A stretch of DNA of 63,909 nucleotides, counting the filler, from Platydemus manokwari (Eukaryota): the NCBI GenBank assembly GCA_037951405.1. It is 5 parts of 5 records of this genome, joined end to end, with 100 filler letters (N's around TTAATTAATTAA, not from the genome) between each part and the next. Parts side by side here need not be neighbours in the genome. Positions count along the whole stretch, not along the records: positions 54,910 to 63,909 come from JBBMOY011316205.1; 4 more parts are not named here. One strand, 5' to 3'. Under the pieces are notes generated by a model, which was not told the origin of the DNA, did not search any database, and was given only the letters and a program-made list of their open reading frames with translations. The first letter of the stretch is position 1. Every line of letters begins with the position of its first letter. Of this stretch, positions 54,910 through 63,909 are shown piece after piece. The position numbers and the translations under genes are program-made.

Positions 54910-55499
54910 TAGATTGTTTGGAGGTAAATTTGTATATTTGCGATTAATAAATCATTTACAAGTGTTTTGTCATTAATATTCAACATTTATATAGGGGTTA
55001 TAGATACCAGTAACAATAATTTTATATCTAAGTAGCAATATTTATAGCTTGTCGTTTATAATTTTTATAAATATTCCTTTGAAGTTTTAATAATACTTAA
55101 AATCAACGACTATGGTATTAAAAGTAGATAATATGGATACAATAGGATTAATTGAGATTGATTTTTACATAAATTATAATTTGTATCATTATTGTCACAG
55201 TTATTGTCTTCATACAATACAGTTGTGAGAGGCTAAAAATAAATACAATGGGGTGAATTATGCCGATGTCCTCAATAAGAACTCTAATTGACTGGTTAAG
55301 ATACAAGAATTAATAAGTGAAATAAAATCGATATTGTTAGATAATAATAAACGACATAATCTCAAAATTTAATAATTTTGTCTAGAGTAAAAAGTTCATA
55401 TAGAGAACTGATAAGGCTGCTCAGACATTCTCAAAGAATTACTCTCTAAATTTGAAACCATTTAATATTCATAAACGAGTTATGATTGGATGGAAATTC

Positions 55500-56460
55500 T
55501 ATCAACATGAAGCATTATTTACTCACCAATACTGCAGTAACTATTTTATACAAATAAAACATTTTTTTCTCACAGTGTATCTGCTCCAATATGTTGTTCA
55601 ATTATATTTATGTAAATATTTCTTTTGATGTAAATATTTCTTTCTCCTTTACTTTGTTGGTAAAAATCTTCTTTAAGACTTCTAATTCTTTGCATGTTCA
55701 TTATAGAGACAATACTTTCTACATCCAGAAATGACATAAAAATATAGGTGATTAATATAGGTTTATAAAGATATAACTCAGATTCAAAGTTTTTGTTATT
55801 TTTAGATTTCATTCATTCGATTTTCTGCTTCCAACGAGTGAGATTGAATGAAATGCTATGGAATTATAATATAAATTGCAAGATGCTGTTGAGCTAAAGG
55901 AAATAGGCGAATTTTATTGAACAGAATAAAAATTCGATTGCGTTCATTGTTGACAGAATTGGTGAAACAGATGTCAATTTGCACTGATTTATTAAAGAGA
56001 TTATTTAATGGAAGGGGAAGTAAAGAAGTGAAAAATTGGATTACCTCAATTTATTTAGGCAAGTATTTCTTTACAACAAAAAAGCAATGTGACAATGCAT
56101 TAATAATTGTAAGGAAAAATGTTTGAAACTTAGTTGTACAAATAGAACACTGATTAACTTTTTGAACATTATTTATAATTAAGTTTGCATTCTCGAAACT
56201 CAACACATTTGAAAGAATATTCTCTCATAAATCAATGTCGATTATCATTAAATGTCTTATTTCGGGTTCTACAACTTAAAATTTCTCAACAAAACCTTTA
56301 TCCTAACGTAGTCACAATCAAACTTTATTAGATATAAGTAAAATCCACACTTATCATGGGCGATAGACTTCGTTGGAAATATAATGGATTTAACAACTTC
56401 CAATGTTTTGTTTAATTTATCCAAAGTATTTCTAAATTTAAATAACTTGATTCAATATAT
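55500..56460 (-). pseudogene. Degenerate cadherin-like fragment
   Basis: TLDKLNKTLEVVKSIIF...YVRIKVLLRNFKL*NP and VQIDICFTNSVNNE, with in-frame stops and residual splice donors. Confidence 0.3.
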
Positions 56461-57079
56461 AGGATAAATTTGGATTACTACATAAAATATTCTCGAACAG
56501 GTCGTTCTCATAAAAATACTATTTCAAAACTAGCAATGTAAATTAATTCTGGAAATTGAGACAATTCGCTTTATATTTCTTTTCAAAAATTCCTGAAAAT
56601 CTTATTGTTCGATCGTGGTTTATTTTTGCAGATAACAGCGGTTTAGATAAATTCAAATGTATTACTAAATCTTACATCCTAAGATATTAATGTTTTTGGA
56701 TAAAAATTGCGAACATCAATTTCCAAATTTTGAAACAAAAATGTAGAAATTGTGCATTATAATTTCCATACAAATATTTATTGGTACATGTTTATTTAAA
56801 AAGTAATTTGTTTAAGAAAAACATTGTTTGGGTATCGACAATTTTGAAACAACTTTCGATTATAGATGGAATCACAAATTAATTACGACGAATCAATCTT
56901 TTATGCTATATTAAGCACCACAAAATAAAGAATCAGATTCTTCATTTATGCTAGATTATATGATGCTTAACACATATTTCGCATACAACGTAATAATATT
57001 ATGAACATAAAAATATTTATTTAGATTTTGAATGCTAAACAAATTACTATTGAAATTTCTAATATTAACATAAGGATAT

Positions 57080-57503
57080 CTAAAACTTTGGAGTTATATA
57101 AGTCCCTGGGATGTTACTATATCCTTTGAAACAGCCTCTTCCTATTATTTCTCCTGCAAAAAACCAGAATATGACTTCTAAAGTCACGGCTCCATTTATT
57201 AATCCTTCCTAATATTGTTTTAGTATTTTATTTTTAAATACTTATTTTAAATAACCTTCATAGTAAGTTGTTTCCATTTACCAGATTTTGCAGAACATAA
57301 TATTTTAAACAGAGCATCCTTTGCAGCTGGCAGATCACTAATTGAAGGTGGTCTCATTTCAACTTTAGCATAAGAATAAAACGTTTTCAATCTTGGGACA
57401 CCATAATCTAATAAACCTAAATGGAAAAGAATATAAAACTGATTATATAATAATGTACAAAACTTTTTGAAATTACAGGTAACTTCGCAACTAATTTTGC
57501 CAT
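57080..57503 (-). CDS. ATP5MG: Mitochondrial ATP synthase subunit g; exons 57503-57464, 57416-57256, 57208-57080; 109 aa
   Basis: PRLKTFYSYAKVEMRPPS...SGKWKQLTMKEGLINGAVTLEVIFWFFAGEIIGRG..GY. Two 47-nt introns. Absent from the supplied ORF track. Confidence 0.93.
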
Positions 57504-57829
57504 TTTTATGTTTACATAAGTCAGATTAAACAAATTAACCTTGACTTATTTAACTAAATTGCTTGAAACATAATAGTTTTGTAATTTAATAGACAAGATA
57601 AAAGAATAGTTATTGAAATAAAATTGTATTTATTTATAATAAATTTTATCTAATTCTCGTTTTTCAATTAATTTTGTCAAGAATAAATTTTAGGGCTTTC
57701 AACAATCATAATATTTGACTTCAAAATTTTGAAGTTCTCTTTGTACAATTATAATACACTATCGAAAAACTCAAACTTTGATAAATTAAATTAATTATCC
57801 ATTGCTATTTATTATTTAACACACGATTG

Positions 57830-58370
57830 TTATTGACATGTAAATAGTGGACCAGCTCATCGATAGTACAATTTCAACATCGGGCGCTTTTGATAGAATT
57901 CGACTTCAACTAAACTTCATCAACCAAGATTTATCACTCGGTTTTTCTTATGAATAAAATATAATTACTAGTTAAAGTGATGAGTTATTATAATTCATTA
58001 TTGGTATAAAGACCTATACATATTAGAGATTTCTTCAAAAATGACTCAAACCACATTCATTATTGATTATCACAGGAGCAGCATTACAAGGCAACTAGGA
58101 AATATGAAGGAAAATTCAAAAAGCTATGAGCATTCATACGTGTGGATCCAAACAATACCCAGAAAATATTGAAGACTCTCATTTTCAAATTAGTAGGAAA
58201 GCATATGCTTAAAGTGCCGAAGTAAATGTTCCAATGTAAAAATTGTTTTCTTTTGCGTGATTTCATCTTGGATTCATTTCAGCACAAGATAAGGGCCATC
58301 AAATCTAATTGAAATTGCGAAATAGTGAAGGCAATCATTAAGCATACATATCTCATAAATCAGTTTATTT
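57830..58370 (-). pseudogene. Degenerate cadherin-like fragment
   Basis: HYFAISIRFDGPYLVLK*IQDEITQKKTIFTL and NLKMRVFNI. Confidence 0.25.
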
Positions 58371-60083
58371 ATGCCAATTTAAGTGTTGATGATCTGACTG
58401 TTTTTTGTGAACTATTAAAAGTATTGTGGATTATTAACTTTGCGCAGAGAAGAAATTTTAAGTTCTCTTTCTACATCTATAATTTGATAATTTAATGATC
58501 ACATTAATTTACTAATTTAATATTAAATCCCACTTTAATATTAAGCCCCACTTTGAAATTCCAATAATCCATTTGCGTGGTGCACTGAGCATCGTTGAAA
58601 ACCCTTTGTATTTCTATATAATTTGGAATTGTAATTTTCGATTATTCTTAAAATATAATTTATATCACATTGCAATAGTTCTTCTTGAAATAGCTACAAA
58701 TTACAAGCGTGCACATATATTAATCATACAGCTACTCATTGTAATTTAGATAAATCTTAGATTGAACCCTAACTATTAATTAAATTTGTTCAATTATTAT
58801 TACCTAGTTTATATTAAGTCTAATCGTATTTAGTGCTTTATTATAAAATTTAAAATTAAAAGAAACCTTTAGATAATTGTTCGTCCATAGTATGGTCCTC
58901 AATACTTACTATCGAATCCATTGGGTAACATAAAGTCAAGAACCAAAACTAATTTAAGACATGTTTAATACATTTTGCCAAGTATGCTGTATTGTGAACA
59001 TCATTAACGGCAGAATTGGAACTTGATAGGACTGCCACTTATGTTGATTCTCGGTAATTTGTTGTTATTTGTTCTTTTCAATGCAAATAGCAAATATTGT
59101 CATCATAATTCTGTTTATTTCCTTTTTAATTATTTTTTCTGTGGGGATTTTTTAAATATTTTAAAAGGTATTAATTTTTTTAAATAATTGTTTTTAAATT
59201 TGTACTTTGATGGCGTTTGTTTTCAATGTGTACTATCTATTGTGATTGTTCATTTATATTTAAACTATTTTTATCATTTCTTAAAGAGTCTTCGGAATAA
59301 GATATAAATTACGTAAAAACACTGCGATCTTAAAAACCTGAAATTTAAATCCAAACAAAACCAAACAATATTTGTCTTATAGAGTTTTTCAAATTTTATC
59401 CAGTTGATGTAGTTTTCATAAATTTATTACGCAATTGAATTTTTCTTGGATCATCTCAGTAAAGTGTATTTATTTTGCTGTTTAGAACGGTGGTATTTTG
59501 AGAATTGATTAAAGAATTCAAATTTTACTAACTACTAGGTAATAAACACAAAAGGAAAAAAGACTACTTGAATAGCCGATGAATCAAATAAATGAAAAAT
59601 CTAATCATCGTTGTTTTGAGTTTTCTCTAAGATCGTGAAAATTTTTAATTAGACAAAAAATTATCGTGTTAAACATATTTTTCGTTTTGTGATTAGTTTA
59701 ATTTTAAAATTTTGTTATTTTTTAATGAATTTTTTTTATACTAAACTAATTTTTATTATTTTAATTGATTTTTATGATTGTCTATATTATATTTGATAAC
59801 GCAACAGCATCATATTTCTTAAAAATGTTTTCTAAGATATTTTATAATGCTATTTAATATATGATAAAACACGAAAAAATAAAATTATAATATATTTTAA
59901 CTGATTATTTTGGACTTTTGAAAGAACAAATGAAACACTACTCGAGTAGTCATTAAATCAAATTAACATGTTGAACTTTCAATTGAATTCCAATAAGGAA
60001 AATAAAAACTGAAAATTAGATAAATTTGAAATAAATTTCGAATGATAAGATTTTAAATTGTCTTGATTTCATTCTTATCTTTA

Positions 60084-63000
60084 TCAAGATTTCTCATTAG
60101 AATGTTGGAAATGTTTTTCAAATTTCCTTTTGATTTTATTATTATTGGAAAACAGTTGATAGGAATCAGCAGTCTTTTCAGAATGAATTGGTAAACATTT
60201 TGTTTCGAATTCAGGTTCTTTACTGATGTAAGAAATTAATGATCGATCATATGTTGGTTTATGGGTTATAGTACTACTTACAGAATGCAACTTGCTGTTA
60301 AAAGATGAATAAAGCTGCATATATGAAATAAAAGATTTTGAATCCTCATTTTCATGAGAAATAAATGAATCATTATTAGTGTTTTCCTGATGTACTTCTT
60401 GATGTCTTTCGGTCTTGGTATTTTTACTATCAATCGATCTTAAAACATTAGAATCACTGGAAAATTCCATACACGCTTTTGATTGTTGATTGAAATTAAC
60501 TTGATTAAAATTACTGGTTGAGGCATGTCTGATAATTTCATTACTGGAATATATACCATAATCATTTGCATCTGTCATATTATGATGATCGAATTTTGTA
60601 TTGGATAATTTAAAAGTCGGAACAGAGGAAACTACCAATTTTGAACTCTGAGATTTCAAAATCGGTAATTTTTTGCTGAAACATTTTCTAAGCTTTTTTG
60701 AACGTTGGGAATTTGATGCTTGATCCAAGCAGAAATCATTAGTTTTACATTTCCGTAGTTTTTGTGATGATATGTGTATCGGTTGTAATTTATTGATTAA
60801 ACTTTTTGGACCTATATCATTATTATTATATTCTGTTGATAGTGACTCATTATCCAGAAATAATTGAACTTTGTTGGTGAGCGTATTGGATGAACTTTGA
60901 CAGTTTTGATTGTCTTGTAGATGCTTGATGAGAGAATAATTTTCATCCTTTGACATTTTAATATCCTCAGCCGATTGGCAATTTCTTAATGGAGACTTAG
61001 AAGATTTGGTTCCAACAAATTTCATTGAATTACCAAAATGTTTTTCAAGGAAATCTGAACTGTTAGATATATGTTTTGATTTCCTTTGATCATGAGGTAT
61101 TTGAGAAGTAGAAGACTTCTTTAATTTCAGCGAACCATAATTAGTTGATGAATTCTTGGCAGTGACTAGTGATGGTTTAATACTTGTCGGTTTTGATTTG
61201 AGCTGCAAAGTGAATTTTGTCTTATGGAATTTGCAATCTTTAGGCTGCTTTAACAAATTTTGTACTACTTCAACAGATGGAGACTTATTCTCGAGAGTTC
61301 TATCTTCAATTACTACCGGTGACGAAGCCAAGCGTTTACATTCAAGTTTCACCGGTTCTTCGACTTCCGTAACGGTTGAATAAAGAAGAGAATTCATAGA
61401 CAATTTTTCAGACGGATTCAAACTTCTACGCAAGGCCAATGACTCTGCAACGGTATCTGTATCTATAGGAAATGTCAGATTGGCATTCATGCTTAAATGT
61501 TTTATCTTTGATTCGTGAAGACTTGGAGCTGTTTGTAAACCGCAATTCATTGTTTTCGACGGAAATATATGAGGTTCACCAACTGAAGTAATTTTAAGCA
61601 ACTTATAATCGTTGGAGAGATTATCTTTAAATGAATCCGGTGATTCAATTAAATTGTAAATCGATTCCAGTGACGTTCCAAATACTGACTTTGATGATAT
61701 TTTCTCATCGTAAAACAGAGAATTGTTAGATTTTTGAAATGACTCATCTGGTTTTTCAAATATTTCATCGGAATTGGAAACCAAATCTTTCATATCCAAG
61801 CAATTTAATGGATTGGTGTGAAAGGAATTTCCATTCAAAATTATTGTTTCATCCGATTTGTTGGACTTATTTTTCAATTCAAAAATCTCATGATTTTCTT
61901 TCAATGTCGATTCGGAATTAGTGGGAGAAAACTGATCTAAATTATCGCCAACGATATCACAGCTATCACAATGTTTCAATTTTAATAAAGACTTTTTCTG
62001 TTCTAAATTATTGAAAAGAACTCGATTTTCATCATGTAGCGAACTCGGTCGATTATCAATGAACGATGAATTAGAATTGATATCAGCCACTTTGTGAATT
62101 TCAGGTACACTTTTATAATGGTCAACATTTGTATCCCAGTGGATGATTTGTTGGCCCTTTTGATCCACTAATGAATGAATATGATTTAATTTCTCATCAA
62201 GATTCAGAGATAATAAATTTCTCATTGTGCTTGAATTATGTTCATTTGATGTAGTAGGCTCAAGACGTTCATTCTGCGAGTTGGCAGTTAAGCCTGATAA
62301 CAGTTTGTAGTTCATTTCTGGTTGAATTATTTGGCGATAATCAGAATTTGATAAATCCTGCCATATAAATGGTGATTTTGAATTTGATGCCGATCGTTCA
62401 GTTGTGCCAACAGTACTTTGATCGTTATCATCTTCCTTCGTCTCGGATTCCTTTGTTTCTGTTTTTTTGGTCTCAATAGTTGGCGGAGGATTTTGTTTTT
62501 TCGTTGCTTCGTTCGTGATATTCGATGTATTTTCACCGGCTTCTTCATAATCTTTAACAAGAGCACTGATGTTGTACAGAGCTTCTGTGAATTCACATTC
62601 TTCCATACCTTCACCAACAAACCAATGAACGAAAGATCTCTTCGAATATAGTAAATAAAATCGATGCGTTAAGCGTTGCCATGCTTGACCAATTGCTGAT
62701 GTGTTTGTTAACATGGCAACATTTTCTTTCGTTCTTGCAAATTTAGAATCTGGAATAATAACAGGAGAAACAGCATTGATTCCTACTTTGAAACCCGTAG
62801 GACACCAATCAACGAATTCAATGCTGTGATCACGCTTGATTTCACTCAAAGCCATATAAACATGATGGGGGCAAATGTTTCCTCGGAAAAATAGAGCACA
62901 AGACATAAATTTCCCATAGAAATGGTCGACTTTCATCATTTGATTGCTTCTATCGAATACAAGTCTAGTTAAATCCTGCACAGATAAATCCTGATGGGAT

Positions 63001-63613
63001 GCTCTTTCTTCACTCATAAGTGGGGCAAAATTACATAAAGGAAAATGAATTCTAGGATAAGGAACCATATTGGTTTGAAGAACTGATAAGTCACAATTTA
63101 GAACATTTACAAACCGTACTGAAGCGGTAACCGACGAAACAACTTGAGCTATCATGCGATTTATTGTATTATAAGTTGGATAATTGAGTGATAAAAATTT
63201 AGCTGAAATTTCGAACATGGCTTCATTATCCAATAGAAGACCAACATCGATATCTTCCATGCAAAAATGCTCACCTAAAAGACAATTGTAAGGTTCAACC
63301 ATTGACGTTGATAGTGTGGGAGAAGGATAAATTGGTATTTCAATTTTTGGTGTTTTGGGATAATCAGAAAGACCTTCAAACATAGCTGACGTGAGTCCAG
63401 CACCAGTACCTCCACCAAGAGATCTTATAATCAATATTCCTTGAACCATGTCACATTGCTCAAATAAATGGCGAGACTGTTCATTTATTTTTGCCAGTAA
63501 TAATTTACCAACAGTGAAAAATCCACGAGAAAAATTATTGGCAGCATCTTCAGGTCCACTAATAAGTCTATCAGGATGAAACAATGATCTGAACATTCCT
63601 TTTCTGATCTCAT
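60084..63613 (-). CDS. Divergent alpha-tubulin with a ~815-aa C-terminal extension; last exon only (5' exons lie beyond the window)
   Basis: DEIRKGMFRSLFHP, EDAANN, GGGTGAG, VEPYN, LDNEA, QTNMVPYPRIHF, FVDWCPTGFKVGIN, KRSFVHWFVGEGMEE and KDYEEAG. Acceptor CAG at 63614-63616. Confidence 0.93.
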
Positions 63614-63909
63614 CTGTTTGAAAGATTTAATAATATTAAATCATATAACTTATTATATTGCCCTTGTACGAAACTTTATTTATTGAGGTTTCGCAGCTTA
63701 TATTGTATTGATATTTGATAGATTTTGTGTTGCATTAACTTATAAAGTTTTTTAATATATTAAAAATTATTCTTAAAATATTTTTATTATAATAAAATAA
63801 ATTAATAATTGCTATAAAACTTTAAAAAAAATTAATATTAATCGCAAATTTTATACTACTAATGTTCTCATAATATAATATGATGGAAAATTGAACTAAA
63901 TAATTTACC

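Follow-up and report, generated by a model that had tools for sequence, protein, structure and literature searches.

Does the flatworm Platydemus manokwari make an α-tubulin that carries, as one polypeptide with its core, a C-terminal tail of 816 residues? The question arises from a stretch of 63,909 nucleotides (nt), the whole of which we call the window and which joins five parts of five records of assembly GCA_037951405.1, with 100 filler letters between each part and the next. Positions 54,910 to 63,909 come from JBBMOY011316205.1 and contain the locus discussed here, whose gene features all lie on the minus strand. An open reading frame (ORF) at 63596-60084 encodes 1170 amino acids (aa) and a stop codon: residues ~1-354 correspond to α-tubulin residues ~83-437, and the next 816 codons (62534-60087) stay open until the first stop. 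The peptide KDYEEAG, with which the core ends, is encoded at 62555-62535 and the frame of the tail is its direct continuation; the peptide at the junction of core and tail begins DYEEAGENTSNITNEATK. Judging from sequence, we find it fairly likely that the locus is the last exon of a functional, flatworm-specific tubulin paralogue, and that its fast-evolving tail is real, translated and of one polypeptide with the core.

The first ATG of the ORF, at 63596, is not the start of the exon, which lies at 63613, behind an acceptor (...tttcaaacAG, with the AG at 63615-63614). The acceptor closes an intron whose 3' end occupies 63614-63909, with a GC content of 0.24 and an in-frame stop at 63629-63627. 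Therefore the first ~82 tubulin residues are encoded upstream, and the last exon is part of a gene with at least one further exon beyond the edge of the piece at 63909. The position and phase of this intron, just before a D-E/Q-I/M-R/K-T-G stretch, are identical in genomic contigs of two relatives (L001; L002/P0113). The initial annotation had placed a tail of ~815 aa in a single exon with α-tubulin. The tail, at 816 aa, is indeed in frame and in the same exon as the core (62535-63613, approximately α-tubulin residues 77-436), but that exon is not the whole gene.

The open frame of the tail

The tail (60087-62534) is closed by TGA at 60084-60086, with a TAA directly after it. Frame 0 contains no stops over 816 codons, against 42-104 stops in the remaining five frames. 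At the per-codon stop probability of 0.076 that follows from base composition, P is ~1e-28 for 816 codons without a stop. Among 2000 shuffles, the longest open stretch averaged 59 codons and never went beyond 134, and in the neighbouring 5.2 kb it did not exceed 92. Read in frame 0, the tail resembles the tubulin core in relative synonymous codon usage, with a correlation of r = 0.79, compared with 0.38 and 0.45 in the two off-frames. Since the tail matches core codon usage in frame 0 only, and the open runs of shuffles and flank are far shorter, the open frame goes beyond chance: it is kept open by selection, as had first been argued from its 2.4 kb of openness.

The composition of the tail is also selected, beyond a mere effect of AT-rich DNA. 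Compared with DNA shuffled at equal composition, the tail has ~2x the expected Glu, Asp and Ser, while Ile, Tyr, Trp and Arg are depleted to ~0.4-0.5 of expectation. The abundance of Ser, Asn and Lys reported in the initial annotation is confirmed (S 15.3 %, K 10.4 %, N 9.8 %), and charge counts agree with its description of a tail that is acidic proximally and basic distally. Tail residues 1-300 (61635-62534) have a net charge of -19, residues 401-650 (60585-61334), which contain a KKLRK cluster, one of +24, and residues 651-816 one of -2. The net charge of the whole tail is +2. Its C-terminal end reads ...HSNEKS, without EEY or a terminal Tyr, and the tail as a whole is not of the short acidic (E)EY type.

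Mean hydropathy is -0.86 in the tail and 0.02 in the core, and the tail falls below the Uversky boundary. An AlphaFold2 model of the tail, run on the single sequence, has a mean predicted local distance difference test score (pLDDT) of 32.7 and consists of coil save for five short helices. By these measures the tail is probably disordered for the most part, largely as the initial annotation had supposed, and its sequence would be compatible with some folded or binding segments. Repeats or low complexity were rejected as its origin: self-BLAST found no internal repeats and Tandem Repeats Finder no tandem repeats; the tail has a sequence entropy of 3.6 bits and the core one of 3.9. A transmembrane segment was rejected too, there being no hydrophobic segment in the tail (maximum 19-residue hydropathy 0.64).

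The tail has no detected relatives. Neither a word-indexed search of 5.8 billion proteins nor an exhaustive HMMER search over 1.84 billion representatives returned a homologue. A Pfam scan up to an E-value of 10 found no domain in it, including tau/microtubule-associated protein (MAP) repeats or any other MAP domain; the sole sub-threshold match was CtIP_N, at 17.8 bits (cut-off 27). ESM Atlas features gave a best score of 0.82, which is under the useful range. Even P0121, the flatworm protein whose core is 85 % identical, ceases to align right after ...EEAGENT, and the two tails do not align. This point is the end of helix H12, where the variable tail starts in all α-tubulins, and a splice site is therefore not required to account for it.

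The core and its flatworm relatives

The core has significant matches to both tubulin domains in Pfam: Tubulin (PF00091; 4.5e-27, 96 bits, cut-off 33), of which the first ~63 profile positions are missing because they belong to the upstream exon outside the piece, and Tubulin_C (PF03953; 2.3e-37, 128 bits, cut-off 26.6). It aligns with residues 83-438 of solved α-tubulins at an E-value of 1e-127 with a single one-residue gap. The best 60 of 69 PDB matches are all α chains, the named matches of the protein search are likewise α-tubulins, and the length of the S9-S10 loop is of the α type. The tubulin signature GGGTGAG of nucleotide-binding loop T4 is encoded at 63396-63416, and its residues G143-G146 are kept across the clade described below. 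The other N-site contacts that the piece covers are kept as well (N101, E183, N206, Y224, N228), as is Asp251; the contacts in the first ~80 residues lie outside the piece.

Identity to canonical α-tubulins is only 51-52 %, however, and the core is a divergent rather than a standard α-tubulin. The assignment to α-tubulin in the initial annotation thus holds for the family, by Pfam and PDB, but not for the kind. The T7 loop reads DLSVLQTN in place of the DLTEFQTN of α-tubulin: Asp251 is present, whereas the catalytic Glu254 is absent, a Val codon (GTT, 63081-63083) standing opposite residue 254 in the PDB alignment. In α-tubulin, Glu254 triggers the hydrolysis of GTP on the β-tubulin of the next dimer. 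In human tubulin, the substitutions E254A and E254N block or slow GTP hydrolysis (PMC7018511). The top PDB match of the core is such an engineered E254A human tubulin, 7sj9.

Glu254 is present in 215 of the 237 α-tubulins that we fetched. Of the 22 that do not have it, 19 fall in one flatworm clade of the tree, two (P0124, P0140) are 62-71 % identical to the P. manokwari protein, and P0220 was not placed. In a maximum-likelihood phylogeny (IQ-TREE), the clade without Glu254 is monophyletic and exclusively flatworm, with support of 100/100. Its residue at position 254 is Val, Ile or Thr. Canonical α-tubulins, including those of the flatworms Schistosoma, Opisthorchis and Hydatigera, fall outside it, so that the clade represents a lineage of paralogues rather than the ordinary α-tubulin of flatworms. 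Across it, changes have occurred at 32 positions on which 10 canonical sequences all agree, among them E254V and four on the outer face of helix H12 (R422L, E423Y, D424N, E429V). We also observed that the clade includes cestode, trematode and monogenean proteins annotated merely as 'tubulin alpha chain'.

All matches to the core that are better than canonical α-tubulins come from flatworms: P0121 (85 %), P0122 (74 %) and P0124, P0125, P0127 and P0134 (64-71 %). Identity to the parasites is 64-65 % for trematodes, 62 % for a monogenean and 54-60 % for cestodes. The P. manokwari protein pairs with P0121 at 100/99, on a terminal branch of 0.07, and the pair lies within a free-living subclade, A, sister to the parasitic (neodermatan) cestode and trematode sequences. 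The identity to P0121, the short branch and the conserved GTP-binding residues show that the core is under constraint.

Tail lengths in the clade were counted from the DYEE motif, by which the P. manokwari tail measures 818 residues (816 past KDYEEAG). The tails of cestodes, trematodes and a monogenean have 5-16 residues. In free-living subclade A they have 37 (P0147), 38 (P0124), 56 (P0127), 62 (P0125), 69 (P0122), 181 (P0134) and 182 residues (P0121), and in a sister subclade, B (P0196, P0203, P0113, P0091; loci L001 and L002), 230-472. The search for long-tailed tubulins in related taxa that had been proposed with the initial annotation thus returned tails of 37-472 aa in free-living flatworms. 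The tail of the P. manokwari protein is the longest in the clade (816 aa against at most 472) and 4.5-fold longer than that of P0121. P0125 is full-length and intron-free on a transcript-like contig of 1580 nt, with its 62-aa tail attached.

EEY is missing throughout the clade, in short-tailed members too. The long tail had initially been read as a replacement of the acidic EEY tail that removes the standard tyrosination site: EEY and the terminal Tyr are indeed absent from it (it ends ...NEKS), but because the whole clade is without EEY, the tail did not replace that site in this lineage.

All four subclade B tails end in SLME[SE]LIR[LI]T despite poor conservation elsewhere. Because this motif is maintained at the ends of otherwise variable tails, we conclude that the subclade B tails are translated in frame. 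The P. manokwari protein does not belong to this subclade: it has a full-length T7 motif, where subclade B has a one-residue deletion. An all-versus-all BLAST of the clade tails gave its tail no match below an E-value of 0.5, and a hidden Markov model (HMM) of the subclade B terminal motif did not match it. By eye, tail residues 288-298 (SLESIYNLIES) look similar to that motif, but we rejected them as a copy of it, since the HMM misses the P. manokwari tail and matches some of 1000 shuffles.

Some further observations concern these relatives. In the tail of P0091 there are also long acidic repeats, built of ETPQEE and DAENE units. At least two subclade B genes occur in one animal, since P0196 and P0113 were obtained from one sample. 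Many of the 'long tubulins' among the protein-search matches owe their length to tandem or mis-joined gene models rather than to a tail; in P0083 (1765 aa), for example, an unrelated upstream protein has been annotated as one model with a cestode tubulin of the clade, and this tubulin part is nearly identical to Echinococcus P0139.

Weighing other accounts of the locus

Several points weigh against the reading of the locus as a translated, long-tailed tubulin. The sole sequencing run found to hold it, X1, is genomic DNA, with a uniform depth of ~14x over intron, exon and intergenic DNA and no joints; it possibly stems from the same sample as the assembly of the window and is not independent support. 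The N-terminal exon or exons lie outside the piece. As the tail has no detectable relative, constraint can be demonstrated on its openness only and not on its sequence. The AlphaFold2 model is weak evidence of disorder, since a low pLDDT from a single sequence is expected for any orphan; ~25 % of the tail residues are hydrophobic and tail residues 300-400 have a near-globular hydropathy of -0.5 to -0.2, compatible with some folded parts. Finally, those relatives in subclade A that are transcript-like have tails of only 37-69 aa.

This last point also speaks for an alternative in which the tail does code for protein while the main mRNA of the tubulin is spliced or polyadenylated soon after KDYEEAG, and the long form is a minor isoform or the tail belongs to another transcript. 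A weak donor, CCG|GTGAAA, is found at the AG codons. That the similarity to P0121 stops exactly after ...EEAGENT could be counted here as well, although this is, as said, where α-tubulin tails ordinarily begin to vary. The tail, however, shares the frame of the core, which no stop interrupts at the junction or beyond. It lacks an acceptor upstream and a start that would serve it separately, the first Met lying ~70 residues in, and a scan for pairs of a strong donor and a pyrimidine-rich acceptor found 0 in the tail. (A pattern scan for introns inside the ORF gave three candidates, all of them within the conserved core and hence false.) The long in-frame tails of subclade B, moreover, are read to their end. 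We therefore hold a short main mRNA to be unlikely.

Alternatively, the tail could have arisen by a recent accident, either because an orphan gene that once stood separately downstream became fused to the tubulin gene or because the assembly is chimeric at this point; it would then be functionless and decaying. The complete lack of tail relatives and the 4.5-fold difference in length from P0121 would fit such an event, as would a break of the X1 contigs at 62590-62627, at a 38-nt word that codes part of the conserved WFVGEGMEECEF stretch, has double depth (27.7 against ~14) and is probably shared with a second tubulin locus in the genome. The break, however, falls inside the core, 56 nt before the junction. 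One X1 contig, at 59341-62619, runs without differences from the last part of helix H12 through all of the tail; because this tail-side contig codes for the final residues of H12 (FTEALYNISALVKDYEEAG) in continuity with the tail, the join is not an assembly artefact. An intact frame of 2.45 kb with core-like codon usage also argues against decay, and variable long tails are a trait of the family. We judge an accident of this kind to be quite improbable.

Finally, a 59-nt mini-intron at 60281-60223 (GTAAGT ... TTTCTTACATCAG), which would trim the ~65 last residues and lead from ...KLHS to an immediate stop, has a consensus-like donor and a pyrimidine-rich acceptor, and short introns are common in flatworms, but frame 0 stays open for 65 codons past the donor (P ~0.006 if non-coding), which argues against constitutive use, and the candidate was picked by eye and not by a trained splice model, so that we give it very little credence.

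Around the gene, candidate polyadenylation signals lie at 59752-59858 (ATTAAA at 59858, 226 nt past the stop, and AATAAA at 59757, 327 nt past it); they come from a pattern scan alone, which is weak evidence in AT-rich DNA. The region 54910-60083 holds no ORF above 80 aa and nothing coding-like. At 59043-59404 the X1 contigs reach a depth of 72-172x against ~14x elsewhere and have several loose ends, with no ORF and no tandem structure, which suggests a dispersed repeat ~0.7-1 kb downstream of the stop codon. Single X1 contigs diverge into unrelated sequence at 62045 (inside the tail), 62972 and 60041; these loose ends may reflect structural variation between alleles, paralogous loci or artefacts of the graph.

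Known systems and possible function

The fold and family of the protein are ordinary; what is unusual is that a tubulin lineage of animals has lost Glu254 and that the tail is so large. Like canonical α-tubulin (human and bovine TUBA1A/1B; PDB 1JFF and 3J8X), the protein has both domains, GGGTG[SA]G, the N-site residues, Asp251 and the α-specific loop before S10. Tubulin tails usually have 10-20 residues and bear the 'tubulin code' of tyrosination, glutamylation and glycylation. Canonical α-tubulin has a tail of ~12-20 aa, whereas that of the P. manokwari protein has 816 aa, combines acidic with basic stretches and does not end in EEY. With the flatworm clade (Echinococcus P0139, Clonorchis P0133 and Calicophoron P0131; the free-living P0121, P0122, P0125, P0134, P0196, P0203, P0091 and P0113) it shares the residue at position 254, the intron position and a non-canonical tail; unlike the others, it has the longest tail, which has no sequence in common with theirs and does not contain SLMEELIRIT. 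We found no paper on a flatworm clade without Glu254 or on long-tailed flatworm tubulins in the literature searched, whose coverage was incomplete and is no proof of novelty.

The closest parallel described is the coccidian α3-tubulin (Toxoplasma TGME49_231400 and its homologues), which has lost the residues that activate GTP hydrolysis and whose tail, 40-48 residues long, has little identity from one species to another (PMC10056924). Its authors propose reduced GTPase-activating (GAP) activity and stable polymers, and in their review of apicomplexan tubulins they describe a tail of 48 residues as 'extraordinarily long' and without counterpart among other characterized tubulins (PMC10056924). 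Compared by description only, the apicomplexan protein differs in having lost both D251 and E254 (to T and H/Q), while the P. manokwari protein keeps D251. Because the clade is restricted to flatworms, the likeness is very likely one of convergence. The engineered human E254A and E254N tubulins have the same residue substituted; the flatworm clade, in contrast, is natural and has 31 further clade-specific changes, which could compensate for or alter the effect.

As an analogy of function only, the tail resembles the projection domains of MAP2 and tau and the side-arms of neurofilaments, in that a long, probably disordered and charged chain would extend from a cytoskeletal polymer and include a basic region like those that bind microtubules. 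There is no homology to these proteins and no tau/MAP repeat, and the chain differs from theirs in being covalently part of the tubulin subunit. By this analogy, the tail may act as a built-in MAP or tether, the role suggested for it at the outset.

A mechanism can be sketched as follows. Given its GTP-binding residues, constraint and short branch, the paralogue would pair with β-tubulin and enter microtubules. Without Glu254, the lattice contacts of this isotype would bring about only slow hydrolysis, or none, of the GTP on the next dimer, and the microtubules would be long-lived. The tail would leave helix H12 on the outer surface of the microtubule and behave as the projection domains of structural MAPs do. 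The proximal third, acidic like a stretched canonical tail, would be held off the acidic lattice, and the basic, Ser/Lys-rich distal part could reach acidic tubulin tails, neighbouring microtubules or membranes and thereby space, cross-link or tether stable arrays. Candidate sites of use are the cortical microtubules of sperm, cilia, and the tegument or epidermis. From this we hypothesize, tentatively and as a possibility that we would not yet call probable, that flatworms have a private tubulin lineage in which the GTPase-activating Glu is switched off and the tails of free-living members serve as built-in, MAP-like projection domains, giving non-dynamic microtubules that space or tether themselves.

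Should the tail be untranslated, a lesser result is left, a divergent flatworm tubulin clade without Glu254. This clade-wide loss is a natural counterpart of the E254A/N mutants used in studies of the GTP cap, and the clade is also present, with short tails, in parasitic flatworms, where tubulins are drug targets. A natural hydrolysis-deficient isotype, if it is one, would make it testable how cells build permanently stable microtubules. If the long-tailed reading is true, a chain of the size of a MAP is covalently attached to every α-tubulin subunit that bears the 816-residue tail; if the fuller hypothesis of MAP-like tails on non-dynamic microtubules holds as well, flatworms would have a new route to stable arrays without separate MAPs, for instance in the cortical microtubules or unusual axonemes of their sperm, or in the epidermis.

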